Of a stretch of 64,000 nt of DNA, positions 1,465-64,000 are shown one piece after another. The notes beneath the pieces are model-generated. The model ran no database searches. It was not told the DNA's origin and saw only the letters and a list, made by a program, of their open reading frames with translations. Every line of letters starts with the position of its first letter. Within the stretch, counting starts at the first letter, position 1. The translations under genes were made by a program, and so were the position numbers. The DNA comes from Ranitomeya imitator (Eukaryota). Location: assembly GCF_032444005.1 (NCBI RefSeq), contig NC_091282.1, forward strand, positions 247,690,001-247,754,000. The letters are read 5' to 3'.

Positions 1465-2593
1465 GTCTAAACTGTGCATTCTAAGGTCCTACTTGCTGAG
1501 CATTTGGCTGTGATGGAAGAATCTGGCAGAGCAGAGATCCCATCAGAGCAACTCCAGGTCCTCCATAGAGGAAGCATGCACATGCTTCTCCTTTAGGATG
1601 AAGTTCCCCTTCTGAACAAAAAGTGTTTTTCACTCTGTATTTTAGGACAGAGGAGCCTTTACCGCATCTGTAGCATCACCTAATGAGGATGGCAGGAAAG
1701 AGTCTGGGAAGCTTAGGAGGTGTGCCATCTGCAGCAGTAAATTTCCTGAAACAATTGGGGAAACCGTTATGTGAAAACTGTATTTCTAAGATCATCAGGG
1801 AGGAGCAATCATCTTTTCTAACAGACATGAGATCCATGATTAGAGAAGTACAAGCGTCTATCTCCATTCTCCTTTCCCCGCATTCATCTCAGCCTGGTTC
1901 CCGTGTTAAAAGACCATAGTGGGAGATGGAGTTGAGTTCAGAGGAAGAAGTACACTCCATCGGATCAGTAAGAGGAAGAAGAGCGTGCCTCAGACCCTCT
2001 GGAAGAAGGGAAGAAATACTACTTCTCATTGGAAAATACAGATGCACTCCTTCGAGCAGTCCGGAATACCAATAAGGTAGAGGAAGCTCAGAAGTCTCAC
2101 TCTATCCAGGATGAGATGTTCGGGGGCCTAAGGTCCCATAGACATTGTCTTTCTGGTAAACAACCACATTCGCGCCATAATTATGGAAAAATGGGAGGAT
2201 GTGGGAAAAAAAAGACCTCGTGACTTTAGGCTATGTCTGCTCTTTGAGCCAGAAGATCTAAAATCCTGGGAGAAGATTCCGAAGATGGATGTCAGGGTGG
2301 CCAAGAAAACATCAATTCCGTTTGAAGATTCTTCGAGTGTTAAGGAGCCCATGGGTAGGAAGACAAACTGCCTTCTAAAAAGGATCTTGGAAAACTAATG
2401 TAGCTGACCCTTCAGTTGCCAGATCCATGCAGCTGTGGATCGACGATCTGCAAGAGCACTTAAAGGATAAGACTTCTAGGGAAGTTATTTTAAGATTCCT
2501 TCCCTTACCCAAATTAGCTACAGGATTCATGGCAGACACATGTGCGGAATCGGTCAGATTTGCTGCCAGAAATGGTGCCCTCTAAAATGCTGC

Positions 2594-5500
2594 CTGACTG
2601 GCTATTTGAAACCTTAAACTCCCTCCTGAAACCTAAAGTACAGGCCCCCATCACCAATCTCAGTGGTGAGGATCTGGCCACTTATTTCCTAGAAAAAATC
2701 AACCACATCCATCAGGATATCTCAGCCCAATCTCCTCAGTGCCTGGATCCCCTTCTCTGCCGCACCTCAAGCTCACTAGACATCTTTGAGCCTGTTTCAG
2801 AAGAAGAAGTTTCCAAGTTCCTCACTTCTGCTCGGCCTACAACCTGCAACAGTGACCCCATTCCTTGACATCTCCTGCAGTCTCTCTCACCAGTGGTCAC
2901 CACTCACCTGACTAAAATATTTAACCTCTCTCTCTTTCTTCAGGTATCTTTCCCTCCTCATTTAAACATGCCATCATAACCCCTTTACTTAAGAAGTCAT
3001 CCCTGGAGCAGAACTGCACTGCTAACTACAGACCTGCCTCTAACCTTTCCTTCATCTCTAAACTCCTGGAACGCTTGGTCCACTCCAGTCTAATTTGCTA
3101 TTTCTCGGATAACTCTCTTCTCGACCCCTTACAATCTCGTTTCTGCTCTTTTCACTCCACTGAAACTGCCCTCACTAAAGTCTCTAATGATCTAATAACA
3201 GCTAAATCCAAAGGTCATTGCTCTCTGCTGATTCTCCTGGATCTTTCTGCCGCATTTGACACTGTGGGTCACCAGCTCCTTCTCACTATGCTCTGCTCCA
3301 TAGACCTCAAGGACACAGCCCTCTCCTGGTTCTCCTCCTACCTCTCTGACCGCTCCTTCACTGTATCTTTTGCCAGCTCCTCTTCCTCTCCTCGTCCCCT
3401 TACTATCGGGGTTCCGCAGGGCTCAGTCCTGGGCCCCCTCCTCTTCTCTCTATACACGGCCCCTATTGGAGAAACATTCAGCAGATTTGGGTTCCAGTAT
3501 CATCTCTATGCTGATGACACCCAATTATACACTTCTTCCCCTGACATCACCCCTACCCTAATTCAAAATACCAAGGATTTATATAACCTTTTTCAAGAGA
3601 GTCAAACTCCAACATATGATTTTCCAACGTTTTTTTCAAGATGGGAGAGTGACTTGGGGATTTCTTTGTCTCAAGAGGAGAGGGACAAGATTTTATTGTT
3701 CACTTTTAGGACCTCGTTGTCTGCTGTATCACAGGAGAGGAGTTACAAGGTTCTGTCGAGGTGGTATAGATGCCCTTGCCAGGTTCATGCTATGTTCCCG
3801 GCGATTCCGGATATTTGTTGGAGATGTGCATCAGAAAAGGGACATATGTTCATATCTGGTGGGAATGCCCGCCTATAAAGAAACTTTGGATGTTAGTTTT
3901 TGATCTTCATAATAAATTATCCATCCGCAAAATACAGCCCACAGTGGAACTAGCCCTTTTATCTCTGTGTGACCTATCGATCTCTGGGTTTAAGAAGAGT
4001 CTTCTCAGACATTTTCTCACGGCTGTCAGGAACTTGATTCCTCGATATTGGAAGCAGGATCGCTACCCCTCATGCTCCGACTTTGTTGAGGAACTAAACA
4101 TATACAGAATGGAACAATTGATAAGCGAATCCACTGGGGATTCTGAGAAATGTTATAACATTTGGGCTCCATGGATTGTATTCAGGGAGACTCCAGAGCT
4201 GGACGTGTGGCTGTCTGGATCCTAATCCATATCTGAAACCGCTCTAGATACATTCATAAAGATGCTGCCCCTATACCCTAGCCTACTGTCATGGCTTAAA
4301 AACCAATGCCGGCAATATACTGATTTTCTCACCGCTACACGGGGACTGGGTCTGCCCGGGGGGGCGGGGGGGGTCGCATTCCCCGTACTTATCGTACCCT
4401 CTTATGTCTACCCACTTTTCTTTCTTTTTTCCTCCTCTTTTCCTTTCTTAACTTTTTCTCCTTCTATCTACTTTTTCTACTTTTTCTACTTAGTGACATT
4501 CTCTACTAAAATAAACGATTAAATATAGCTAGTAATGCTTGATTGCCTTCGCTGTTGTTTTATATGTTTCAACAATGAAAGTTATTATTGCTAAATTGAA
4601 AGTGATATCATTGGCATTGGCCAATAGCACCCAAAACTCGCTGGGACTTTCTCTTCCTGCCTAAATTATGGGTTGTATTCTATTGAGCTTAAAAACTATG
4701 TTTCAGCATTGTTCCATTGCTTGTATTATCTATTTGCTTCAATAAACTTGATTTATACAAAATACCAAGGATTGTCTGTCTGCTGTCTCTAACATCATGT
4801 CCTCCCTCTATCTGAAGCTAAATCTGTCCAAAACGGAACTTCTTGTGTTTCTCCCTTCTACTACATCACTCTACCCAACATCGAAATTACCCTGGAGGGT
4901 TCAACTATAACTCCCAAGCAGCATGCCCGCTGTTTTGGGGTCATATTCGACACCAACCTTTCCTTTACTCCCTATGTCCAATCACTCACTTGCTCTTGTC
5001 ACCTGCATCTTAAAAACCTCTCCAGAATCCGACCTTTTCTCCCCTTTGAAACTGCTAAGACTCTTACTGTTGCTCTTATTCATTCTCGTCTGGACTTGAT
5101 CGGTCTCCCTCTTACCAAACTTTCTCCTCTCCAATCCATCTTGAATGCGGCAACCAGGGTCATATTTCTGTCCAGCCGCTTCACCGATGCCTCCATCTTG
5201 TGCCAGTCATTACACTGGCTACCCATTCGCTACAGGGTCCAGTATAAACTCATCGCTCTCACCCACAAAGCTCTACACAGTTCTGCACCACCTTATATCT
5301 CCTCTCTCATCTCTGTCTATCGCCCTACACGTGCCCTCCGTTCTACAAATGACCGAAGACTAACATCCCCCGTAATCCGAACCTCGCACCTCCGTCTCCA
5401 AGACTTCTCACGTGCTGCGCCAGCTCTCTGGAATGCACTTCCCCAGACGATCAGACTGATACCTAGCCCCGACCTATTCAAGGGCGCTTTGAAAACCCAT

Positions 5501-5903
5501 CTCTTCAAACAAGACTACCACATCAACTACTCAGTAAACTAACTTTGCCCTGTTCCCTCCTTCCAAATATTATTCTGAATCTGCACCCTACTATTCATCT
5601 GTCTCCACACCCTCCATACACACGATAACTGCACTTGATACTTGACTATTGCACTTAAACACACGGGCTGATGACCGGATCATGCAGCTTTATATGAAAA
5701 TCCCTATTTATTATAATTGCCAGACCTGAAATAACAAGCACTTCTCACCTATTGTGTCCCCCCCATTTCATTGTAGATTGTAAGCTTGCGAGCAGGGACC
5801 TTACCCCTAATGTCACTGTTTAAATTGTCTTAACTTGTACTGAATTTATTGTCTGTACATGTCCCCGCTTAATTGTAAAGTGCTGCGGAATATGTTGGCG
5901 CTA

Positions 5904-5948
<45 letters not shown>
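2594..5948 (+). mobile_element. 5'-truncated L2/CR1-clade LINE inserted in DIRS-A gag
   Basis: ORF2 RT motifs ([42 protein letters not shown]), C-terminal LHWLPIRYRVQYK, 3' UTR and (ATT)n tail at ~5903-5948. Frameshifted. Confidence 0.92.
3580..4757 (+). mobile_element. 3' fragment of an L1/Tx1-clade LINE inserted in the L2
   Basis: L1 ORF2 cysteine-rich C-terminus (DICWRC...HIWWEC), AATAAA at 4741, and a 16-bp target-site duplication CAAAATACCAAGGATT at 3564-3579 and 4758-4773. Removal restores L2 IQNTKD/CLSAVS. Confidence 0.9.
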
Positions 5949-5973
<25 letters not shown>

Positions 5974-7801
5974 CTTGAAAATGTGGTGTGGGGGTAGTCG
6001 AAAAGAAGTTCTATTCTATCCCCTTCTCAAGATCTAGAGTATTCGGGCCCGTGCTAAATAAAATTCTAGAAAAGGCATCTGACACCAAAAAATGGTTTCC
6101 TGAGGAGAAGGCCAAGAGCTATCAGCCCTTTCATAGGTCCCGCCCCTCCCAGGGACTGGGTTATAAAGTGAAAGGGAATTCTTTTTCTTAGGGTCAGGTC
6201 TGGGAAGATAATGTGGCGGTATGCGTCGAAGGGCAGCTAAAGTTGTACATAGAAGGTTGGCTGGAAGTTTCCCAGGATCAGTGGGTTCTAAAAACTATAT
6301 CTTCTGGGTATATGATAGAATTCATCCCGTTTCCACCCGGTAGTTTTATCCTGATTCCCAGTCCCCTGCCGCCGTCTCCCATGAGGTCAGACATACAAGA
6401 TCTATTAAAAGCTGGAGCAATAATCCTATTTCTTCAGGGGGAATGATTCTAGGGTCACTACTCGAGCCTTTTCTCCATCAAAGAACCCTCATTTGCGTCC
6501 TGTACGATAATAAATTTAAAACCTCTAAATTGTTGAGTCAGATGCAAAAGGTTCGTGATGGAGTCAATCAAGTCAGGGATTCCCCTGATAGACAGAGATG
6601 CGGTAATGTGTACATCAGATTTAAAAAAAAAAAAATACTTATATTACCATGTCCCCATTCATCCTTTCTGTCAGAAATTTTTAAGATTCGCCATAAAATC
6701 TCGGGATCAGATTCATCACTTTCAGTTTCAATGTCTTCCATTTGGCCTAGCCTCAGCCCCTCAGGCATTCAGGAATATGGTAGCGGAAATAGTGGCTAAC
6801 ATAAGGAGAGTAGGTATCGCCATAATCCCCTATTTGGCCGATTTTTCTAATAACCAGATCCAGTTACGAACTTCTAGAACATCTTCAGATCTCGATATCT
6901 ACACTTCAGAAGCTAAGTTGGATAACAAATTGGAAAAAATCAGACCTAGTGCCAGGAACCAGGAAAAATTTCCTGGGAGTTCTTAGACTTCTGCCTAATG
7001 ACCTCATTTCTACCAGTAGAGAAACAGAGATCCGTAAAAGACAGGATTAATCTGTTCTCATGAAATCGTTATTACATCAGAGCGGCAATGAGATTCTTGG
7101 GGATTAATGACAGCCTGCATCCACTGGGTTGAATGAAGTCATTTCCATTCACGAGAACTCCAAAAGGCCATTTTATTAGCCTGGGACAGATGGCAGGGTA
7201 ACTTTGGACAACAAGATGCCCCTTCCCCTTGCTGTAAAAAGATCCTTGGTCTGGTGGACTTTTCCACAGAACCTTCAAGTAGGGATCCCATGGATCTCCT
7301 CTCCATGCGTGTTGGTTGCCACCAACGCAAGTCAGTTAGGATGGGGTGGTCGTCTGGAAGGGAAATTTCTTCAAGGGACCTGGTCTCCAAGTTCGGTCCG
7401 ATCTTCGATTTACAGGGAGCTTTGTGCTGTATGGGATGTTCTTCAACAGATCCAGTCTCTAGGCAAAAACGGGCATATAAAGGTTCTGTTGGACAATGTA
7501 ACAGTATCCTTTCTACACCATCAGGGGTGACCAAGACATCTGTTACTACAGGGTCTAGCTACAAAGATTTTCCTTTGGGTATAGAGAACAGTTCTGTCTG
7601 TTTTTCAGCAGTCCACTTAGAGGGGGCCCAAAACCAGTTGGTGTATTGCCTAAGCAGTCTTTCTGACCAGGTAATATCCACCATATAGGCAAGCAGGAAG
7701 CTGGTTACATCAGCCATATACAGTAAAATCTGGAAAAGATTTGGTTTAGAATGTGGGGAATCTACGGTGGATATTTCTGGTCCAAAAATTCCTAGAATTC
7801 T

Positions 7802-7835
<34 letters not shown>

Positions 7836-8271
7836 GCAGGGTTCAACAAAGGTTTAAGGCCAAGCACATGAACGGTTCAAATTTCAGTTTTAAGTGTCTT
7901 CTTTGACTTTACCCTAGCCTCTCACCCCTGGATAGCCAGATTTTCTAGGGCAGTCCAGAGTCTAAAACCCTTGGCGAGGAAATCCATTTCATTATGGGAT
8001 CTGAATTTAGTACTTTAATGCAAACATCCCTACGAGCCTGTGAGTGATGTGAATATCCGCAGACTTTCCTTTAAAACTGCTTTCTTGGTGGCAAGTGCAG
8101 AGTTGTCTAACAGAGATCCGCAAGTTCTGCAAGTTTATGATGACCGAATAGTCTTCAGATTTGATCCGGCCTTCCTTCCCAAGGTATTATCTACCCCAAA
8201 TATGAATCAGGAGGTGGCCTTGATCTCCTATTAGCATCTCAAGAACCAGAAAGAGCAGTTTTACTCGGACT

Positions 8272-8363
8272 CCCATGACAGCACGACGAGAGAGGGGATC
8301 CGCCCATTAGGAACAGGAAACCTACAGATACAAAAGGGCGGTACCTCTCCCTTGCCTCAGTTG
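8272..8363 (+). repeat. DIRS-C left inverted terminal repeat
   Basis: Exact reverse complement of 13674-13765 (92/92, checked base by base). Confidence 0.97.
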
Positions 8364-8946
8364 GTTTCCTGTTCCTGAGGGGACGGGTGCCTACAGAAGG
8401 AGCCCCGGCCGGCCGATTACGGTAGCGGGGGGGTCTCCTACCTCGGCCGGTGCGGAGATCCCTGGAGACGCCACGGTGGTCTTTGCTGGATTGCACGTCG
8501 GTGGCGTTCGCAGCAGGGAGCAGAGTCCGGAGGATTTCCTGCATCCATCAGCGTCGGCGCAGGTAAGTATTTCCCATTGGTGGCGCAGCGGTGCGGCGTG
8601 GCTGCGGGTGTCGGGCTCAGATGTGTGGAGTGAGCTCCGGAGCGCTGCCGCTCCGTCCCCGGCGTTCTGCACCGCTCTCAGCGCGTGCTGGAGCGTTTCC
8701 GGGTGCGGTGACGTGGAGGGGCGGAGTTTGGTAGCCGCTTCCGGGACGCCGGACGTCTGCGCATGCGCGGTCGGTCCAAGATGGCGGCGCCCATCGCATC
8801 TGGACGCCGGTTCGTCCGCCAGCCCTCCTGCCCTCCCTGCTGTGTCCGCAGCCAATAGGGATCGCGCTGGCCCATCTGCTGACCGGATCCAAGGGGGATT
8901 TAAGCGGGTTACAATGTTAGAACCCTGCTTTTGGTCGCAATTCGTC

Positions 8947-10496
8947 ATGGAGAGTGGTGGTGAGCAGCAGCAGCAGCAACGGTCAGACGAGGTGCGTCAG
9001 AAACCCAAGAAAGATGGAGGCGACCAGCCCAGTCGCAAAAGCTCATCCGAACAGGGATCCAGAGCTTCGACTAAGAAAGAACCCCCTCGGATTCCGGTAC
9101 TTGACTTTGGCGCACGGGTAAGTGAAATACGTGAAAGTTCACTCTGTGACGCGGGCCCCTTATACTTTATTTTCCAGGGGAAGAAGAGTACGGACAAGTC
9201 AAAACATAAGGAGTGTGCCCTCTGTGGAGTCCCCTTACCTGACTCTTGTTCGAAAAAGTTATGTGCCCCCTGTATACAACAGACGGTGAGGTCTACAGGA
9301 GTGGTTGGGTGGAAGTGACTTTAGGTCAGATAGTGGTTATCACCTATATTGTCCTCCCCTAGGTAGCAGAAGAGTCCGTGAGTACGGCAAACTTAAAAGA
9401 AATGATCCGGCTAGAAGTAAGGGAGTCATTACGATCCCTATCCCAAGCGGAAGGCTCGAAGCATAGGACCCCTCTGGACTCTAATTCGTCAGAAGAGGAA
9501 AGAGAAGAAAGTACCTATCTCTCTATTCCTTTCTCCTCTTCATCAGATGAGGAGTCTGGACGATTTTGTCTACCCTTGGATAAGATTGACAGGGTGGTCA
9601 AATCAGTTAGAGGCACGATGGGTATAGAGGAACCCAAATCACAGCCCTCAAAACAGGAGTTGATGTTTAGTGGATTAGATCGTAAAAAACATAGATCTTT
9701 TCCGGTAAATGAGAAGATCCAAGAATTGATCCTCCGAGAATGGAAAAAAACGGAAAAAAAGGGGGCCTTACCGCCAGCTTTAAAACGCAGGTATCCCTTT
9801 GATGATCTGGTTGTGGATACGTGGGATAAAGCCCCTAAGTTGGACGCGGCAGTAGCAAAAGCGTCAAAGAAAGCCTCATTACCCTTTGAGGATATGGGGT
9901 CCCTCAAAGATCCTCTAGACAGGAAGGCGGATATCTTCCTAAAAGGTACCTGGGAGATGGCGGCAGGATCCCTCAGACCAGCCGTGGCCGCAACATGCAC
10001 AGCCAGGTCATTAATGGTCTGGCTAGATCAATTAGAGTCTCAGCTTAAGGACGGTGCATCCAGAGATTCTATTCTGAAAGCGCTACCGACAATTCAGAAT
10101 GCTGCGGCGTTCCTATCGGACGCATCTGTGGACTCTGTCAGAATGGCGGCTAGGGCGGCAGGACTATCTAACGCGGCTCGCAGAGCCCTATGGTTAAAGT
10201 GCTGGTCAGGTGACATTCAGTCCAGAACTAAACTCTGCGCCATTCCGTGCGAGGGACAATATCTCTTTGGTCCAACGCTGGATGAATTGCTGGAAAAGGC
10301 AGGCGATGACAAAAAGAAGTTTCCCAGTCTGTACTCTGCATCCTACCGCCGACCCTTTAATCGAAGAAGGTTTGGTCGCGGGAAGAAACGCGGGTCCTCT
10401 CCCACTAGAGAAAGTTTCAGATGGGAAGACAGACCCGGTAGAGGTACGGGCTACATGTTTCGCCGTTCCTCAAAGGATCAGAAAAAACCGGAATGA
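8947..10496 (+). CDS. gag: DIRS-C Gag (ORF1), predicted spliced: exons 8947-9117, 9178-9285, 9363-10496 (~470 aa)
   Basis: Phase-0 GT-AG introns 9118-9177 (GTAAGT...TTTATTTTCCAG) and 9286-9362 (GTGAGG...TCCTCCCCTAG). Splicing joins the CALC...CAPC zinc finger to the 372-aa ORF at 9378. The splicing is predicted, not observed. Confidence 0.8.
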
Positions 10497-12397
10497 CTAG
10501 CGATCCCTGTGGAGGATAGACTGTCAGCATTCTCCTCAGCGTGGCTTGACATTACGAACAGTAAATGGGTCAGAGGCATTGTTACTAAAGGTCTAAGGCT
10601 GGACTTCAATCATTGGCCTCGAGAAAAATTCAAATTAACCCCTTTTCGTTCCTCCCCCCTGGAGCAAGCAGCTCTAGAAGCAGAAGTCATGAACTTATGC
10701 TCTAAAAACGTATTGGTGGAAATCCCAGAATCAGAAAGAGGAAGGGGATTTTATTCTCCTCTTTTTCTGATCAAAAAGCCAGATGGATCTTTTAGAACGA
10801 TCATAAATCTAAAATGTCTTAATGAGTTCCTGGTTAATGACTCCTTCAAAATGGAAACAATTAATTCAGCAATAAAAATGTTGTTTAATCGCTGTTTCAT
10901 GGTAGTTGTAGATCTTAAAGACGCATACTATCATGTTCCGATACATGAAGATTTCCAGAGGTTCCTGAGAGTAGCTGTGTCAATGGGGGGTCGCATTCGC
11001 CATTTCCAGTTCAGAGCTCTCCCCTTTGGCTTATCAGCGGCTCCTAGGGTGTTTACAAAACTAGTGGCCGAGGTCATGGCGCACTTACGAGAGTCCGACA
11101 TCCTGATCATTCCCTACTTGGATGATTTTCTTATAGTAGGGAGCTCAGCAGACCATTGCCTGTCCCAGCTAGAAACAGCCACATCCAAACTTGAGCGTCT
11201 GGGGTGGATCATAAATTATGAGAAATCTCGTTTACAGCCTCAAAAAATACAAAGATTCTTAGGACTGTTATTAAACTCAGAATCCCAACAGTGTTGCCTT
11301 CCACCCGACAAATTATTACATATCCAGCAACAGGTGTCTAAGGCAATTGACAAACCATCCATGACCCTTAGACAGGCTATGTCACTATTGGGTTCCTTAA
11401 CCTCTTGCATTCCCGCTGTCCGTTGGGCCCAATTCCACACCAGACCGTTACAATCTGAGGTGCTGGTTAATGATAGAATCTTACAGGGGTCCCTGCAGAG
11501 TCAGATTACCTTAGGTCCAAAAGCACTCACATCTCTTAGGTGGTGGCTAGTCAGTGAAAACTTATCGGCGGGAGTTCCCTGGGTGTCACAGGTAACACGT
11601 GTTGTAACAACAGATGCTAGCCCTTCGGGTTGGGGAGCACACATGGATGACATGATGGTTCAGGGTCTATGGCCCCCTCCCCTAACATCAGCCTCCTCCA
11701 ACCAGAAAGAGTTAATGGCAGTAGAGCTTTCAGTGAAAAAATTCCTCATATATCTGCAGGGTCATCATGTCAAGATCCTATCGGACAACCAGGTGGCGGT
11801 CACATACATAAATCATCAGGGTGGAACTCATTCCGAGTCACTGATGAGAGTGGCGGAATGTCTGTTCCAGACAGCGGAAAATCACTTCTTATCCCTAACC
11901 GCTCTACACATAAGAGGAGAAAAAAAAAAAACGTCAAAGCGGACTTTCTAAGCCGCAACACCTTGAGGCAAGGGGAGTGGTCCCTAAACAATTGCGTGTT
12001 CGATCAGATTGTCCACAGATGGGGACATCCAGAAGTAGATTTATTTGCTACCAGGGACAACCGGAAGACAACAAAATTCTGTTCCCTAAATCCCAGGGAG
12101 AATCCTCTGGCGGTAGACGCTTTTCTGATCAATTGGGATTTTCAGCTGGTGTATGCATTTCCTCCACTAGGCCTGTTACCCTTAGTAGTCAGGAAGATAA
12201 GAGAAGATCGAGCCAGAGTTATATTGATTGCCCCATTCTGGCCCAGAATGGCCTGGTTCACTTGGCTCAGGATCATGTCAGTGGAGGATCCCTGGGTGCT
12301 TCCGGAGATTCCGGATTTGCTCTACCAGGGTCCGATCAGTCATCCGCAAGTAAAGAACCTTCATTTAACGGCATGGATTTTGAAAGGGCGTTACTGA
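10497..12397 (+). pseudogene. pol: DIRS-C ORF2: reverse transcriptase, RNase H and DAM-methylase-like domain, with one frameshift
   Basis: DLKDAYYH, FRALPFGL, YLDDFL (RT); TTDASPSGWGAH, ELMAV, SDNQVAV (RNase H); DLFA...YAFPP (MT-like). Frameshift in an A12 run at 11920-11931. Confidence 0.92.
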
Positions 12398-13401
12398 AAA
12401 ACAAAGGGTTCTCCCCGAGTTTAATTGAAACCCTTATGAAAAGTAGGAAGCAAATAACCACAACAATCTACGCTAGGACCTGGCGAAAGTTTCTGGCCTC
12501 TTCTGATTTCAATTTAGAAGAAGGAATACCTATAAAACAAATCTTAGAATTCCTGCAAAAAGGCTTAGTTAGGTCTATCCACTAGTACTTTAAAGGTACA
12601 GGTCTCGGCCCTAGCGGCTCTATTCTCCTGTAACATCGCCAATAATTACTGGATCTCAAGGTTCATTAAAGCATCTTGTAGGTCTAGACCCATACATAAA
12701 GATAGATCTATGCCTTGGGATCTCAACTTAGTCCTATCAGCATTGGCTAAAGAGCCGTTTGAACCTTTACGATCAGCTTCAATTAAGGCCATATCCCTTA
12801 AGACAGCATTTCTTGGAGCAATTACATCTGCCCGTAGAGTAGGAGACATACAAGCTCTCTCCAGGGTTTCCCCTTATACAGAGTTTCTACCAGACAGAGT
12901 AATCCTCAGACCGGACCCAGCCTATTTACCAAAAGTATCATCACGGTTTCACAGGTCACAAGAGATAATTTTACCATCCTTCCTCCCCAATCCTGCTAAC
13001 CCTAAGGAAGAACTACTCCATACATTAGACGTTAGGAGATGTCTGCTAGAATACATCTGTTACTGACACATGGAAGAAAGATGATGCATTATTTTTCTTT
13101 CCAAAATCCTAGAAAGGGACTCAGGGTATCAAAGTACACGCTAGCAAAGTGGATTAGGGAGGCTATCTCTTTGGTTTATGCTGCAGGTGGGGGTCCGGCT
13201 CCGCAGAATCTGAGGGCGCATTCCACCAGGGCCATGGCTACGTCCTGGGCGGAAAAATCTGGAGTATCAATCGACCAGATATGTAAGGCGGCCACATGGT
13301 CATCCCCGTCCACCTTCTTTAAACACCATAGGTTGGATTTGGGGGCTTCCTCTGATCTCACATTTGAGTTAAGGGTGCTACAAGCCATAGTCCCTCCCTA
13401 A
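11977..13401 (+). pseudogene. DIRS-C ORF3: tyrosine recombinase overlapping ORF2, disrupted
   Basis: SARRVGDIQAL and LRAHSTRA motifs. Frameshifts near 12570, 13050 and 13090. The expected catalytic Tyr (HY in DIRS-D) reads HH. Confidence 0.9.
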
Positions 13402-13423
13402 GGTACCTTACATCTCTGTAATT

Positions 13424-13507
13424 CTCTCGTCGTGCTGTCATGGGAGTCCGAGTAAAGCATTAAGCTACTTACTGGTAGCGGCATTTCTCGGAGGCCCATG
13501 ACAGCAC
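13424..13507 (+). other. DIRS-C internal complementary region (ICR)
   Basis: 13424-13456 is the reverse complement of 8260-8292, and 13457-13507 is the reverse complement of 13753-13803; the halves join at AAA, complementary to the TTT core. Confidence 0.97.
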
Positions 13508-13673
13508 CCTTAGTTCCCTCCCTATTCATGTGGGGGTTGCACTTCCTATAGATGTATATATCTCACATATGATACCCAGTTCCAAATATATGGCTGAAAT
13601 TTTGTATATAATCTGTATATAGTGTATATTTTTGTGCCACTAACCGCGGTAGTCCTCTCAAGACTCTGAAATA

Positions 13674-13806
13674 CAACTGAGGCAAGGGAGAGGTACCGCC
13701 CTTTTGTATCTGTAGGTTTCCTGTTCCTAATGGGCGGATCCCCTCTCTCGTCGTGCTGTCATGGGCCTCCGAGAAATGCCGCTACCAGTAAGTAGCTTAA
13801 TGCTTT
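13674..13806 (+). repeat. DIRS-C right inverted repeat plus right extension
   Basis: 92-bp inverted repeat, then a 38-nt extension ending ...AGCTTAATGC followed by TTT. Confidence 0.96.
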
Positions 13807-16681
13807 TCCAGTCTATCCCTCCAGACAGCACCACAAGAGGTAGTCCTTCCTTGACCTATGATGTGACCGGATCAAAGACCAGTTAAAAACCCCTTCCCAC
13901 CTCCACCTGACAGTGTTTTTTCCTATCCCCATGAGGGACAGATGCATGAGAGGCTCATAGGAAGAGCAGAAAAAATCTTCCTGATCAGTTGAGCAGGAGC
14001 TGCTGGATGTGGAAGTCCTAGCATTTCTCTCTCTCCTTCCTCTTGCAGCAGGGTCCGGAGGCTGACGCCTCACTGAACAAGAGGACCCTCAGCTTGCAAG
14101 TAGAGCTGTGGCTCCTGGTTTAAGCCACTTCCCCCTCAGGGGGATCTCTGCTCTTACATCCATTCCCTTACGGCACTATCCAGAGGCTGACATCTCGCTG
14201 AATAAGGGGTCCCTCAGCCTGCCAATAGAGCTGGTGTTCCTGGTTCAAGCTGCTTAGCCCTTCGGGAGGGGCTCTTGGCTCGCGGTCATCCATTTCCTGG
14301 TCGGGTTACAGGGAGCAACATGTAAGTCTCTATTACCCGACCTGCGTTCCAGCATGGATCGCACTTTGGGGAAAGGCGAATCACTGCTTAAAGGGGGAAG
14401 GCCGCTCCTGACAATGCAGATGGAAGACAGGTGAGAGGTAAACTATTGTACTTCTGGGCCTGAGTTACCAGTGCAGCAAAACAGCCATAATTGGAGAAAC
14501 AAAGCACTAGTGGAGAATCTTCCCTGAAGGAAACGTTCTTTTATCTGGCTATAGAGGATGATCCTGTCTCAGTTGCAGTACGGTTGTACAGATATCACTT
14601 AAAGGATCTTGTGCTGTGCCCTCATTTATTTGCATGTATATACGTATATGGCACAATTGATGGTAACAGCATTAATTTAGGCCACATTTAGAGTCCAGAC
14701 TCGCTGTGTCGTTAACCTCAATACCACAGTAATGATCCACATTGCTCTATCAGGTGTTCTGATGATGATCCAATGTTGGCAATGACAGGGGATGTACCGG
14801 CCAAACTATATATTTCCATAGTGTCCAGCCACTTGCTTGAGAACTAGAGATTTAAAGGGAACCTGCCACCTGAATTTGGCGGGACCGGTTTTCGGTTATA
14901 TGGGCGGAGTTTTCGGGTGTTTGATTCACCTTTTCCTTACCTGCTGGCTGCATGCTGGCCGCAATATTGGATTGAAGTTCATTCTATGTCCTCCGTAGTA
15001 CATGCCTGCGCAAGGCAAGATTTCCTTGCGCAGGCGTGTACTACAGAGGACAGAAAATGAACTTCAATGCAATATTGCGGCCAGCATGCAGCCAGCGGGT
15101 AAGGAAAGGGTGAATCAAACACCCGAAAACTCCGCCCATATGACCGAAAACCGGTCCCGCCAAATTCAGGTGACAGGTTCCCTTTAAGGATTCAGAATAG
15201 ACGTCTGTGGACTCCTGGGTGTATAATGGATAAGCATCCCAATGCTCTGCCCATTTATTCACCCGTTTAGAGATTGTAATTCCTATATGTCCAAAGGTCA
15301 ATAAATGTTAGACACTTCAAACAGCACCATTCCTTACCCTGGTAATGATTATGGGTGTATTGGCACCTTATTACCCCTACTTGGATATATTTGCATAGTT
15401 TGGTGTACATCTATGGGACCATTTTTTTGAGTGCTTTGTCTTTGTGGGGATACTATTGATATATAGCATAGAGCATTGTTGTTCCTGCATCTTTACAGCC
15501 TCCCTGTATAGAGTATCCTTAACGGAAAGCAGTATTATTGATTTTTTTTTTTTATTTTTTTTTTCTGCACCCTCATTTAACCCACTAGCGCTGATTGGCA
15601 CCTCCATACTGCACAATATAAACTATTCTTAGCTCTTTTTTTGGAGGTTTATTGCCTTGTGTTTTTTAGTCTTATTTTGTCTTTTTATTGAATAACAATT
15701 TATTTTTTAATTTTATCATTTGTGAGTTGGAGTCCCTTCTCTTCTAATGGCAATGGAATTCAATAGACTATGATGATGTATATTAAGGGATTGGTCTAAT
15801 CTACTTGGTCCTGCAGGACTCCTTGTGATTTGGTATGATGGTCTTTAATCAAGGTATAGTCGGAGCCTGGAAGAAGCACGTGAGGTTATTGGTCTGCAGC
15901 AATCCTCATGGTGGTTGTGGCGGTGGCTTTCACCATATTTCTGCTGTGCAATAAGAGGTGTTTGAGGTCTATTCTATGGTTGCGATAGTTAGAAGTATAA
16001 TCTGTCCAACAATCACTGCTGTTCATTATTGGTGTTTGGGTACAACAGTGGAGACTTTCTCTCTCTGTTTCTGCTGTATAATTAGTCTACCACATTTATA
16101 CTGAATATTTGTCATTACAGACATATATCTGACACTTGCTACCGTGACTTATCTTTGCATAATTGTCTATATTTTCTTCTGGTTTTACAAGTCATTTACC
16201 ATATCTAACCTAGTTCTGCCCAGGACTTCGGTTCTTTATGGCTTCTGTACCCACCCTGGTGCTATTTCTCTGGTACTAATCCTGTGGTGCTGTCCGGAGG
16301 GACGGACTGGTAAAAGGGAATTAGACCTACAGGTAATTTGGTTTCCATGTTTCCTCAGGTCAACACTCTTATTTTCCCTCCCTTATGTTTAACTGTGGCT
16401 TGCACAAGATCGTTTTTCCTGCACATCGTTCATGAATCAAGTCGCCATGGCTCTAGCTGGGACTGTTAAACGGTTATCTTGCATACGAGTTTCTAGTTGC
16501 TCTTGTAGACAGTTTGCATCCATCCTTTGGTGGTACTTTGAAAAACACTAGAATGTGGAGGTGGGAGAGGCCTTTTAACCTCTCTCTGATCCTGTCATAG
16601 GTCAAGGAAGGACTACCTCCTGTGATGCTGTGCTGAGGGACTTCTGTAAACCGAATTTCCGGTAGGTCTAATTCCCTCTTT
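13804..16681 (+). mobile_element. DIRS-B: non-autonomous DIRS-type element (2.9 kb)
   Basis: Left repeat 13816-13906 is an imperfect inverted match to 16555-16640. The ICR at 16281-16344 is complementary to both the left terminus and the right extension (16648-16676). No gag, pol or recombinase ORF recognised. Confidence 0.82.
14856..15183. mobile_element. Fully palindromic Kolobok/T2-like MITE
   Basis: TTAA flanks (14852-14855, 15184-15187), AGGGAACC...GGTTCCCT termini, and arms complementary over the whole ~328 bp. Confidence 0.85.
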
Positions 16682-17591
16682 CACTCTGTTAGGAAGACAG
16701 TCATTCATTACTTAGAGGCTACCCAGGATTGGAGATAGGACTCCAATTTGTTTATCCAACATGGGGTAGGAACAGAGGAAAGGAAGCATCTTAGTCTTCA
16801 ATCACAAGGTAGATTAGATCCACAATAGACCTGGCTCATTCAATAGAAGGGAACCCCCCCCCTCCACCTGAAGTTTTAAAAGCTCATTTGACTAGAGCAG
16901 TGTCCACATTCTTGGCAGAAGGAGGGGGGGGGCTTCAATATATCAAATCTGTAGGCCTGCAATATGGTCCAACCTGAGGACTTGTTATCAGGGCAGCAGA
17001 CTGTTTTCAGTAGGGAGATTCTCCATGCAGTTGTCCTGCCATAATGCCACACTCTGGTATTCTCCTTGGTTCTGTCAGGAGGGATGCCCTGAAAAATGGT
17101 AATTAGACCTGCTTGTATTTCTAGGCGTCCATCCTGACAGTGCGGTTAGATTCCCACCCTTGTAACATTTTCTATCTTCATGTGATTTTACGTTTGTTTG
17201 AGAAGATTTGTACTTGGAAAAGACACTGAAGGGTGGGGATGGAAGGATAAGCTATAGCTCAGATAAATGGTTAAAGGGCTTGTTCAGCACCTAAAATGTA
17301 TTTGCTAAATATCTATCTTTACTCCCCAAGCACTCTTTTATGAGTTTCTTTATTATACAATGTCTTACACTTTTTCCTGTGTAGCTAATCTCTAATTGTG
17401 GGGTTTTTTGTTTGTTTGTTTTTTTAGAACTGTTCTTCCTGTCAAGTTTTATTTGAGAGGAGTCTCAATATATATATAATTTATTGCTTGTCCTATATGT
17501 TTAACTACATCTCGACTGCTCATAAGCTATAACATCCGGGCTGTCCACACTTTGCTCTGCACTTACCTTCTAAAACTTCAGTGAAGAGTAA

Positions 17592-18348
17592 AGGTACCTT
17601 CACACATAACAATTTCGTTAACGATATCGTTGCAACGTCACGCTTTTTGTGACGTAGCAACGATCCCGCTAACGATATCTTTGTGTGACAGCGACCAACG
17701 ATCAGGCCCCTGTTGGGAGATCGTTGGTCGTGGGGAATGATCAGGACCTTTTTTTGGTCGCTGATCACCCACTGTCATCGCTAGATCGGCGTGTGTGACA
17801 CCGATCTAGCGATGTGTTCACCTGTAACCAGGGTAAACATCGGGTTACTAAGTGCAGGGCCGTGCTTAGTAACCCGATATTTACCCTGGTTACCATTGTA
17901 AAAGTAAAAAAAAAAACAGTACATACTCACATTCTGATGTCTGTCACGTCCCCCGTCGTCAGCTTCCCTGCACTGTGTCAGCGCCGGCCGTGAAGCAGAG
18001 CACAGCGGTGACGCCGGGGGACATGACAGACATCGGAATGTGAGTATGTACTGGTTTTTTTTTTTGGGGGGGGGGGTTTTACTTTTACAATGGTAACCAG
18101 GGTAAATATCGGGTTACTAAGCGCGGCCCTGCACTTAGTAGCCCGATGTTTACCCTGGTTACCCAGGGACTTCGGCATCGTTGAAGACAGTTTCAATGAT
18201 GCCAAAGTCTTTCCCCAGATCGTTGGTCGCTGGAGAGAGCTGTCTGTGTGACCGCTCCCCAGCGACCACACAACAACTTACCAACGATCACGGCCAGGTC
18301 GTATCGCTGGTCGTGATCGTTGGTAAGTCGTTTAGTGTAACGGTACCT
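17592..18348. mobile_element. Harbinger-like MITE, AGGTACC family
   Basis: TAA on both sides, AGGTACC...GGTACCT termini, internal hairpin modules; related to 38728-39123 and 42418-43119. Confidence 0.85.
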
Positions 18349-42417: not shown

Positions 42418-43119
42418 AGGTACCGTCATACTAAGCGACGCTGCAGCGATTCCGACAACGATCCGGATCGCTGCAGCGTCGCTGGAGAGCTGTCACACAG
42501 ACAGCTCTCCAGCGACCAACGATCCCGAGGTCCCCGGTAACCAGGGTAAACATCGGGTAACTAAGCGCAGGGCCGCGCTTAGTAACCCGATGTTTACCCT
42601 GGTTACCATCGTTAAAGTAAAAAAAACAAACGCTACATACTTACCTACCGCTGTCTGTCCCCGGCGCTGTGCTTCTCTGCTCTGGCTGTGAGCGCCGGGC
42701 AGCCGGAAAGCAGAGCGGTGACGTCACCGCTGTGCTTTCCGGCCGCTGTGCTCACAGCCAGAGCAGAGAAGCACAGCGCCGGGGACAGACAGCGGTAGGT
42801 AAGTATGTAGCGTTTGTTTTTTTACTTTAACGATGGTAACCAGGGTAAACATCGGGTTACTAAGCGCGGCCCTGCGCTTAGTTACCCGATGTTTACCCTG
42901 GTTACCAGCGAAGACCTCGCTGAATCGGTGTCACACACACCGATTCAGCGATGTCTGCGGGGAGTCCAGCGACGAAACAAAGTTCTGGACTTTCTTCCCC
43001 GACCAGCGACAGCACAGCAGGGGCCTGATCGCTGCTGCCTGTCACACTGGACGATATCGCTAGCGAGGACGCTGCAACGTCACGGATCGCTAGCGATATC
43101 GTCTAGTGTGACGGTACCT
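42418..43119. mobile_element. Harbinger-like MITE, AGGTACC family
   Basis: TAA flanks; palindromic over nearly its full length. Confidence 0.9.
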
Positions 43120-54888: not shown

Positions 54889-57800
54889 GTGTGCCTAGTT
54901 CTCAACTGAGGCTGTCACAGTATAGCAGATAGGGTCGGACACAGAAGTAGTCTCTTATAGCCTGGGGCTGCCTTAGTTACTGTGTGTAATGCCACGCATT
55001 TACACAACAGCAAATAAGAATGGCAGCCCTCAGCGGCTCAGTTAGGAAGTTATAAAAAAAAAACACTTGACGCCATTTAATTTTATGCATTTATATATCA
55101 ACCTTTAAACATAAAGTCCAAATTACCTTTAAATCTACATTGCTATAAACATCATGGAAGAAATGTTATTCCCTCTTTGCGGCTCTTGAGCACATTTGTA
55201 ATCTATTGAAGCGCTGTGGTCGCCAGCCTTGTGGTTCTCCAACAGTTGCTGAACTGTAACTGGAATTTGTAATTATTTTCTAGGTTCTGATTATGTGGCT
55301 TGAAAAAATGGTCTGTCAATCACACTCTGAAAGGGTGGGGGAGTATTCTGAGCTCATCAATATGCCAGCTTTAAGGCCTTTGTGTCCTCAAGGCATGGTG
55401 TTCTTGGTTGCCAACTTATTAGCATATCGGGCACAAACATTCTACAACTGTACTCTTGAGATATCCTTGATTATTTTAGAAAACTAAGTCAACCTTAACC
55501 TCTGTTTATGTAACTGGTCGATAGTGGCGTTCGTGATCCTTTAACGAGGCTTTTGCTGCTCGCCGCTCTTCCAAAAGCCATGCTGGCAGTTTATGGATTC
55601 TGTCCATTTTTTAACATTGTCATTTCAACAATATTTTTATTTTCTATTAGATAAAGGTCCAGTATAATGTCTGTTTCTTTTGGGCTCATACTTTGCTTTA
55701 ATTATTATTTAGACAATGAAATATACCTAAATACCTTTGATCATTTTGTATTTTAGTATTAGATTTATAAGTTTTACTCATAGAAGCAATTACACAGGGC
55801 GTTGTCTTATATAGAGGTGTCGTTGTGTTAGGCCGGTGTCACACTTACAACTGCAATGCGAGAAACTCGCACTAAATACCCGACAATACCGCCAGCACTC
55901 GGGACTGGAGCGTTCAGCTGCATAGAAATATAGGACAAAAATACGTTTTCTGGAGGGCACCACAAAATGCATACGGGGATACACCTGAGGTCAATAAGAA
56001 ACAATCATAATTATGCATAGAAAAAGCTAAAGACCACAACAGGGATCACCACAAAATACAAAAAGGTTTTATTGAATACACAGCAGACAAATACCAATAA
56101 AAACATTTAAAAAGTCATAGACATGACATATGAACTACCCAAACGGCTTGTGATAGAGCCTAAGGACGTCCCTCAACAGGCCATGGTATATAAATATAAC
56201 AGAGATATTTACCAAGATATCAGTGCGTATCATGCAGAATGCACTATCCCATAAGACTAATATTGCACATTCAAAAGTGAAAATGCAGAAAATCATTTAG
56301 AAAAACAGTGATAGAATACTGCCTAAATCTCCTGTGTGTACAACCCATTCCCGATTCATATTCAAAGAGGTTGTGTCCAAGCTGCCTAAATCAGACCTTA
56401 CAGGACGAGGCTGCGGTTACAACCACTAATATCAGGGCCATAATTAGGCAGGAGATCCAATCTCTGGGATCAAAAAGCCTAAAAAAACAAGAAAGCAAAA
56501 GCTTTTCCCCCGTCTCCAGTTCAGAGTTTGAGATGGGCTTAATCCGTTCCTCCAGTACCTCAGGATCATCATCCAGTTCTTCTGAGGATGAGGGCGGAGC
56601 ATGCTTTCCAGTTGACAGCATAGACAATCTTATAAAATCCGTGAGAAACACTATAAGTTGTCCAGACACTAAGGGGGTCAGATAAGCACAGGATATTATG
56701 TTTGCAGGCCTAGGCCACAAAAAACGGCGAGCTTTCCCAGTCATTTCCGCCATCAAAGACCTTGTAAAAAAAAAGAATGGGACAAACAAGGTAAGGGGTT
56801 TCTCCAATCCTCTTCCAAAAGGCGTTACCCCTTCAGTGATGAAGAGTTAGCAGCGTGGTCCAAGGTCCCAAAAGTGGATGCGGCTGTGGCATCCACCTCA
56901 AAACAGTCATCTCTCCCTGTTGAAGATGCAGGAATCTTACTAGACCCATTAGACCGTAAAACCGAAGCTCTTCTTAATCCCATATGACGTACTATCCCAT
57001 CAAGGTGCCCTGGGACTCAATTCCCAGTGACAGGATAGTACGTCATATGCGATCGGCCGCGCTCACGGGGGGAGCGCAGCCGATCGCGGTCGGGTGTCAG
57101 CTGCCTATTGCAGCTGACATCCGGCACTATGTGCCAGGAGCGGTCACGGACCGCTCCCGGCACATTACCCCCCGGCACACCGCGATCAAACATGATCGCG
57201 GTGTGCCGGCGGTGCAGGGAAGCATCACGCAGGGAGGGGGCTCCCTGCGGGCTTCCCCGAGACCCCCACAGCAACGCAATGTGATCGCGTTGCTGCGAGG
57301 GTCTCCTACCTTCCTCCCTGCAGCAAGGCCCGGATCCAAAATGGCCGCGGCATCCGGGTCCTGCAGGGAGGGAGGTGGCTTACCAAGTGCCTGCTCAGAG
57401 CAGGCGCTTGGTAAGCCTGCACTGCTGTAAGTCAGATCGGTGATCTGACAGAGTGCTGTGCAAACTGTCAGATCAGCAATCTGTGATGTCCCTCCCCCCC
57501 CCCCCCCTCCCCGGGACAGAGTAAAAAAGTTAAAAAAAAAATTTCCACATGTGTAAAAAAAAAAATAGAAAGAAAAAATTCCTAAATAAAGAAAAAAACT
57601 GAATCCCATAAATACATTTCTTTATCTAAATAAAAAAAAACAATAAAAGTACACATATTTAGTATCGCCACGTCCGTAACGACCCCACCTATAAAACTGT
57701 CCCACTAGTTAACCCCTTCAGTAAACACCGGAAGAAAAAAAAAGAGGCAAAAAACAACGCTTTATTATCATACCGCCGAACAAAAAGTGGAATAACACGC

Positions 57801-63756: not shown

Positions 63757-64000
63757 CCCCTTTCTGCCATTAGACGTACTATTCCGTCCATGTGGGGTGG
63801 GCCCTACTTCCCAAGGACGGAATAGTACGTCATAGGCGATCGGCCGCGCTCACGGGGGGAGAGCGGCCGATCGCGGCCGGGTGTCAGCTGCTTATCGCAG
63901 CTGACATCCGGCACTATGTGCCAGGAGCGGTCACGGACCGCCCCCGGCACATAAACCCCCGGCACACCGCGATCAAACAATCGCGATGTGCCGGCAGTCC
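63757..64000. mobile_element. Left end of another piggyBac-like element in the DIRS-E recombinase (runs off the window)
   Basis: TTAA (63753-63756) followed by CCCCTTTCTGCCATTAGACGTAC; same family as 56978-57200. Confidence 0.85.

Follow-up and report, generated by a model that had tools for sequence, protein, structure and literature searches.

Nested DIRS elements meeting at T-runs in the genome of the poison frog Ranitomeya imitator

DIRS elements are retrotransposons whose integration is attributed to a tyrosine recombinase (YR). In the standard model the 3-bp junction of a circular form recombines with an identical genomic sequence and no target-site duplication is created (PMC3266345, PMC7192593). 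The circle-junction model goes back to Cappello 1985, Goodwin & Poulter 2001 and Poulter & Goodwin 2005, as these are summarised in PMC3266345 and PMC7192593. The junction trinucleotide is species-specific (PMC7192593). DIRS-like families of Xenopus tropicalis and X. laevis have TTT at both ends (PMC9210276), and AAA is given as the circular junction of XtDIRS2 and XtDIRS3 (PMC3266345). No one has yet reconstituted DIRS integration or put the recombinase's target specificity to an experimental test (PMC7192593). Here we describe a 64-kb stretch of Ranitomeya imitator DNA (GCF_032444005.1, NC_091282.1:247,690,001-247,754,000, forward strand) in which an old DIRS copy, DIRS-A, is split by two further elements, DIRS-C and DIRS-B. 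The whole stretch, which is free of N runs, is called the window, and all coordinates are window positions.

Accretion by tyrosine recombinases is familiar from bacteria, where integron cassettes form arrays at attI and prophages or integrative elements form tandems at attL/attR. Among DIRS elements, DIRS-1 shows a preference for insertion into DIRS-1, and nesting has been known since 1984 (Cappello 1984, as cited in PMC7192593 and PMC5633606). For fish DIRS, both 'homing' and hot spots have been described (PMC6387122). No report of an insertion exactly at the terminus of a resident DIRS element was found in the literature searched, a body without the main reviews (Poulter & Goodwin 2005; Poulter & Butler 2015).

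The locus is best read as an old DIRS copy that took up two further DIRS elements, one after the other and independently, each by a conservative tyrosine-recombinase exchange between the T-run core of the element's circular junction and a T-run in the target. We put the probability of this reading at about 0.75. The evidence comes from the codon-level fit of the two parts of the split element, from the complementary regions that record the element ends, and from a second species in which only one of the two insertions is found.

Two probable integrations in the DIRS-A recombinase gene

DIRS-A is interrupted for 8.4 kb, precisely between a Q codon and the Phe codon TTT of its recombinase gene, and no residue is duplicated or lost there. 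The left half ends with ...KEQ and the right half begins with FHS VRKTVIHYLEAT; over a longer stretch the gene gives ...QEVALISY*HLKNQKEQ, then DIRS-C and DIRS-B, then FHS VRKTVIHYLEATQDWR. At the same place related YRs read ...QEILLPSFFNNPKDQEEEQ FHF LD VRRTVIRYLEAT..., and the pattern of the relatives is ...QE(I/V)(L/V)LPSF....(K/E)E.(Q/K/T) FH(F/S/T) LD VRR.V..YLE.T..(W/F)R. Compared with 14 related recombinases, the two halves of DIRS-A are contiguous at the codon level. A separate lesion, a 2-codon gap (LD), lies three codons into the right half. Searches with the proteins of the best-preserved copy, DIRS-C (tblastn), place the recombinase homology of DIRS-A at 7995-8231 and pick it up again at 16774-17003, and by homology to DIRS-C the two halves are within ~4 residues of each other. 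An exhaustive HMMER search with the 71-aa recombinase piece of DIRS-A matched 71 DIRS recombinases, including DIRS pol-YR proteins of Bufo and Ranitomeya; the best are 55-64% identical, and relatives at this distance fix the junction at the codon level, not at the base level. An earlier note on the window had the recombinase broken at 8259 and resumed at 16679, with the gap filled by DIRS-C (8260-13806) and DIRS-B (13804-16681), which share the T's at 13804-13806. Both placements hold to within 1-2 nt, and KEQ and FHS are contiguous when set against the relatives.

The ends of DIRS-C are recorded in its internal complementary region (ICR; Table 1). The left half of the ICR (13423-13456) is complementary to 8260-8293 at 34 of 34 positions and the right half (13454-13507) to 13753-13806 at 54 of 54. 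The halves overlap on AAA (13454-13456), which corresponds to the 3-bp circular junction. The reverse complement of the ICR is exactly the right end of DIRS-C, one TTT and the left end, so the ends are defined to the base and the circle junction is a run of three T's (T3).

Table 1. Features of the nested DIRS locus and of the other DIRS-derived elements in the window (ITR, inverted terminal repeat; RT, reverse transcriptase; MT, methyltransferase)
Feature	Position	Strand	Remarks
DIRS-A left part	5979..8259	+	gag remnant 5979-6155, RT/RNase H 6225-7527, N-terminal and central recombinase to ...KEQ
A-C junction T-run (T + TTT)	8259..8262	+	first three bases of DIRS-C by ICR = 8260-8262
DIRS-C	8260..13806	+	complete-ended; same orientation as DIRS-B
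C left ITR	8261-8363	+	97% like right ITR 13674-13776; 103 nt
C gag	9378-10496	+	Pfam LAP2alpha-type gag, 1.7e-20
C RT/RNase H	10509-11951	+	RVT_1 5.6e-22; RT_RNaseH 8.7e-7
C MT-like stretch	11669-12397	+	Dam match only sub-threshold, E = 0.036
C recombinase	11977-13401	+	split over three frames; Phage_integrase match sub-threshold, E = 0.18
C ICR	13423..13507	+	reverse complement of circle junction ...AATGC-TTT-ACTCGG...
C right ITR and extension	13674-13806	+	right ITR 13674-13776
C-B junction T-run (TTT + T)	13804..13807	+	last three bases of DIRS-C = first bases of DIRS-B
DIRS-B	13804..16681	+	2.9-kb non-coding DIRS-type element; left ITR 13816-13920, right ITR 16541-16640, extension to 16681
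B ICR	16280-16347	+	halves 86% complementary to 13804-13838 and 16645-16680; overlap AAA 16312-16314
DIRS-A right part	16679..17142	+	recombinase from Phe codon TTT (FHS VRKTVIHYLEAT...) to ~17003; ICR 17066-17142
DIRS-D	34977 to ~40162		relative of DIRS-C, proteins 45-72% identical
DIRS-E	~56300 to beyond 63770		DIRS-derived (tblastn, C proteins)

The order of arrival follows from contigs built from sequencing reads and placed on the window at a 90% likeness threshold. Run X1 is from the same organism, probably from the source sample itself, and run X11 is from a different organism. In X1 one contig spans 8050-8286 (depth 7) and another 13784-14000 (depth 9), both with 0 mismatches, against a single-copy depth of 8.5 for the flank; 31-mers across both ends of DIRS-C are likewise present in read-derived contigs at single-copy depth. 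In X11 a contig joins 8259 straight to 13804, with 3 letters that fit both sides, at a depth of 22 where the flanks have 17 and 51. Its breakpoints match the ICR-inferred element ends to the base, which makes a spurious joint very unlikely. This contig is the B-only form, and DIRS-C thus arrived after DIRS-B. The ICR-templated ends of DIRS-C are intact at 88 of 88 positions as against ~86% for DIRS-B, so that DIRS-C is young and DIRS-B old. The earlier note, which had named DIRS-C as the probable later arrival and had suggested comparing the locus across species for a B-only allele, was right on the order, and the allele exists in X11. DIRS-C was the last to arrive and was inserted without loss of flanking DNA, as in the published 3-bp circle-junction model. 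Since a B-only form exists, the co-integration of a heterodimeric C-B circle was rejected.

The count of T's agrees with this order. The A-C junction reads CAG-T-TTT-ACTCGG, the C-B junction AATGC-TTT-T-CCAGTC and the B-A junction CCCTC-TTT-CAC, and the B-only form reads CAG-TTTTT-CCAGTC (T5). The T5 of the B-only form and the T3 of the DIRS-C circle add up to the observed T4 + T4, with no other flanking base duplicated or lost, and a conservative exchange at mid-run would give just this count. A staggered cut with a 3-bp duplication was also considered; it gives the same T count, but the ICR assigns the TTT to the junction of the element. The T-runs at the circle junctions, as read from the ICRs, have lengths of T3 in DIRS-C, T4 in DIRS-B and T5 in DIRS-A, and with a T4 in DIRS-B and a T5 in DIRS-A the registers are ambiguous. 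The claim that both inserted elements have TTT as circle junction therefore stands for DIRS-C; the core of DIRS-B lies somewhere inside its T4 run. By strict count CAG and CAC are separated by four T's instead of three, which puts the halves of DIRS-A one base out of frame. The ends of DIRS-B, the right end included, differ by 1-2 nt from those that its ICR predicts, and every boundary is accordingly exact only to within the T-runs. Integration at a short core without target-site duplication, which the earlier note had taken as established, agrees with the literature (PMC3266345, PMC7192593), as do TTT ends in frogs (PMC9210276).

These observations suggest the following course of events. DIRS-B, a non-autonomous relative of the DIRS-A lineage, would first have recombined with the Phe codon TTT of the recombinase gene of DIRS-A, leaving a T5 run where DIRS-A and DIRS-B meet. 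The unrelated C family would have followed much later, with a circle (...AATGC-TTT-ACTCGG...) that recombined with the middle of this T5. Such an exchange would leave T + TTT on the left of DIRS-C and TTT + T on its right, with flanking DNA neither lost nor duplicated. The anatomy of the locus, the order of the events and their precision are shown by the sequences and contigs; the enzyme chemistry would be that of the published model.

Structure and relationships of the elements

The window holds at least five DIRS-derived elements (A-E) by the tblastn survey, and their best protein relatives are DIRS proteins of dendrobatid, bufonid and other hyloid frogs. Chance falls far short of explaining these structures: the ICR of DIRS-A supplies a 23-nt end motif that is found once in the window where 0.00 are expected.

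DIRS-C has a 110-nt inverted pair that is 95% complementary. The best protein relatives of its RT are just 53-68% identical. Its recombinase region has the ARR...AHSTRA motifs in common with the relatives, and a profile of related recombinases matched no solved structure by sequence (PDB). The C-terminal catalytic motif (13039-13401) differs from the KHYRLD of the relatives. With this altered motif and an open reading frame (ORF) spread over three frames, the copy likely encodes no active recombinase. This copy is complete-ended and, judged from its coding sequence, probably not autonomous at present. The family has hundreds of copies, with summed depths in the thousands as against 8.5 for the flank, and by depth it is abundant in the X11 species too. 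Other genomic copies of the C family have internal joins (contigs of runs X1 and X15). In one join, at 13449-13783 and present in two samples, the left ICR half is followed by 11 other letters and then by the right end; another runs from ITR to ITR (8284-13686) and skips 5401 nt. These joins suggest short derivative forms of the family.

DIRS-B has the full end geometry of a DIRS element. Its ITR arms are 89% alike over 13816-13861/16595-16640 and 77% alike over 13864-13920/16541-16597, and the distance from its ICR to the right end is 297 nt, compared with 245 nt in DIRS-C. A tblastn search of 13804-16681 with the C proteins and 120 DIRS RT proteins gave no significant match and hence no detectable coding capacity. 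Between its ICR and the ICR-like region of DIRS-A (17052-17110) the likeness is 79%, and DIRS-B and DIRS-A share the right-end motif GGTCTAATT.CC. DIRS-B is so placed, on these likenesses, as a decayed or non-autonomous relative of the DIRS-A lineage, with DIRS-C (and DIRS-D) in another. The stacked elements had been described as belonging to different families. Since the ICRs of DIRS-A and DIRS-B are this similar, only DIRS-C is clearly of a different family, and DIRS-A and DIRS-B represent related lineages. DIRS-B also holds a 336-bp near-perfect palindrome (14852-15187) with two 167-nt arms that are 94% complementary and 2 nt apart; it looks like a hairpin or an insertion of the type of Miniature Inverted-repeat Transposable Elements (MITEs).

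DIRS-A is decayed, with numerous stops and frame changes. Its RT has a sub-threshold Pfam RVT_1 match on 6537-6983 and is 29-41% identical to DIRS-C and frog DIRS RTs (tblastn); among 120 RT matches none is closer than ~40%. A word-index protein search with the 71-aa recombinase piece gave no candidate for an uninterrupted copy of the A family. Further gag pieces lie upstream at 2150-2570, with other inserted repeats in between: the gag is split by ~3.4 kb (2570-5979) that contain LINE-like ORF remnants (3770-4225, 5096-5542). DIRS-A thus carries further nested insertions and is old. An ICR-like palindromic pair is present at 17072-17140. The termini and the right ITR were not found; a search between 1000-2300 and 16900-17700 gave no convincing ITR pair, and the right-end motif predicted by the ICR is absent downstream. 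RNase H and the N-terminus of the recombinase are separated by only ~160 nt (7527-7689), and the MT-like domain that is present in DIRS-C at 11990-12400 is thus lacking. Either a deletion or an MT-less lineage would account for this.

DIRS-D starts with TTT; its ends lie at TTT in non-DIRS DNA, and neither abuts another DIRS element. It has no recognisable ICR where DIRS-C has one, and its right extension is shortened. A short repeat (GACGTACTAT..., then GCGATCGGCCGCGCTCACGGGG... and a palindrome centred on CAGCTG) occurs twice in or by DIRS-E, at 56977-57125 and 63773-63910, one copy inside the gag and the other directly after the stop of the recombinase ORF. Two hits on DIRS-E by a small DNA transposon are a possible explanation. 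Elsewhere in the window, palindromic MITE-like repeats (GTAACCAGGGTAAACATCGGGTTACTAAG...) at 17824-18163 and 42517-43083 are 71-89% alike. The region 1-1050 is internally repetitive (self-matches of 73-83% at many offsets), GC-rich and of strong GC skew.

Alternative readings of the shared junction

Several points weigh against the history of two successive integrations given above. The X1 junction contigs anchor 27 and 23 nt in repeat, which is under the bridging rule of a 31-nt anchor on each side, and the X11 joint is a single contig with a 29-nt side, placed at the 90% threshold. Short anchors of this kind, together with the hundreds of copies of the C family, are what would be seen if the assembly had misjoined DIRS-C and DIRS-B at a short T-run or had collapsed a mosaic of several copies. 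An overlap of 3-5 nt is too short to mislead an assembler, however, and the 31-mers over both junctions, without a mismatch, the matching join from 8259 to 13804 in an independent species and the fit of the two DIRS-A halves at the codon level leave such an artefact scarcely credible. The same X11 contig could be read in the opposite direction, with DIRS-C ancestral and lost from the lineage of the other species by precise excision through a DIRS recombinase, so that the B-only form would be derived. The conservative reaction is reversible in principle, excision would restore exactly the T5 form of X11, and that species, too, has the C family in abundance. Excision is nevertheless highly improbable: the ICR-templated ends of DIRS-C have no substitution in 88 nt x 2 as against ~14% in DIRS-B, a sign of recent arrival, and insertion requires fewer assumptions. 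We know of no reported excision of a DIRS element.

The remaining adverse points concern the place at which DIRS-C landed. A landing within 2 nt of a resident end is a priori rare: ~7 of the 4087 TTT/AAA cores in the window without DIRS-C (1897 TTT and 2190 AAA registers) are recognisable DIRS end cores (0.17%), and the ends of DIRS-B make up ~1% of the 347 registers in the A+B composite. A 20-nt ITR motif, CCA(T)GACAGCAC.AC.AGAG, is common to the left end of DIRS-C and to that of DIRS-B, which forms the right half of the target (z = 4.9, p about 0.001), and a half-site model would predict this. In such a model the hybrid site of flank, TTT and ITR end keeps a recombinase-binding arm and so becomes a preferred secondary target, and head-to-tail arrays arise as at bacterial att sites or integron attI. 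DIRS-C does sit exactly in the T-run at the left end of DIRS-B and in the same orientation; under a uniform-TTT null a coincidence of 0.17% per insertion is unlikely even in a window this dense in DIRS, and 'homing' to DIRS DNA is reported and unexplained (PMC7192593, PMC5633606, PMC6387122). Against this, the case is a single one, picked from 755 scanned windows of the genome with 89 DIRS notes, and chance alone would give about one such case if the whole genome were as dense in DIRS as the window. With DIRS ends spread uniformly over a multi-gigabase genome the expectation falls far below one, by a rough estimate and not a computed figure. The shared motif reflects common descent and lies 18 nt from the core in DIRS-B and 15 nt in DIRS-C and DIRS-D, a 3-nt offset; the likeness between the target's left half and the right end of DIRS-C falls short of significance (p = 0.09). 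The other readable ends are unstacked: the right end of DIRS-B adjoins recombinase coding sequence of DIRS-A, and both ends of DIRS-D are in non-DIRS DNA. DIRS-B itself went into a plain internal TTT that resembles neither of its ends (shuffled alignment, p = 0.4-0.9), and TTT alone was thus enough at least once. The reuse of the junction as a favoured site is therefore unlikely. Quite unlikely too is the wider proposal that DIRS recombinases preferentially reuse hybrid sites at resident DIRS ends across families, that heterologous head-to-tail arrays grow by accretion, and that 'homing' and pericentromeric clustering have this basis.

Simpler explanations are at hand. The T5 at the A-B boundary offers three TTT registers, and DIRS integration may leave or lengthen T-runs at the element ends (from T3 to T5 here), which would make these ends easy to reuse. 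The choice of this site probably reflects homing of DIRS elements to DIRS-rich DNA, in which any TTT suffices, and no recognition of the junction as such. The coincidence of DIRS-C landing at the end of DIRS-B is suggestive, not significant. One case cannot show a preference for element ends, and the hypothesis of the earlier note, that an existing junction is a preferred target, is not supported as stated and is currently unnecessary.

Two successive integrations at T-runs, with flanks conserved at the base level, support the circle-junction model in a vertebrate. The B-only form in one species and the B+C form in another are a natural before/after pair for one integration. If element ends proved to be reused above chance, a concrete mechanism for DIRS clustering would follow, a hypothesis that this one locus raises. 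The result is otherwise an ordinary nested DIRS insertion of unusually tidy geometry with a useful cross-species comparison. The literature already has frog DIRS with TTT termini, integration that creates no target duplication and DIRS-into-DIRS nesting, and only the idea of junction preference is new.

Comparison with known systems

DIRS-C resembles the DIRS1-like elements. It has ITRs, an ICR with a 3-bp overlap and the same trinucleotide at its ends, and it lacks a target-site duplication. The coding regions would follow the order gag, RT/RNase H, MT and YR, with matches for MT and YR that are sub-threshold. Nothing essential differs; particular to this locus are the natural before/after pair in a T5 and a T-run length that varies by lineage.

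The likeness to the DIRS elements of Xenopus extends to the TTT ends, ITRs of ~100-120 bp, an ICR that overlaps the ITR and the coexistence of many degenerate families. The host here is a poison frog, and the relatives of the elements are 53-68% identical for the RT of DIRS-C and 55-64% for the recombinase piece of DIRS-A. As in the reports on nesting and homing, elements accumulate in or beside other DIRS elements, with at least five in the 64 kb of the window. Those reports, as far as they were available here, describe clustering and nesting and not an insertion exactly at a resident terminus.

Accretion in bacteria offers a looser parallel. There, as may have happened here, a circle recombines at a short core beside a resident element and yields a head-to-tail array in one orientation. 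The earlier note had likened the locus to an integron, and the comparison fails for want of a fixed platform carrying an integrase and attI of its own: the elements sit at a Phe codon inside a recombinase gene that is dead, and each element brings its own junction. There are also no folded sites of the attC type, a single stacked pair stands in place of an array of cassettes, and the elements are retrotransposons.

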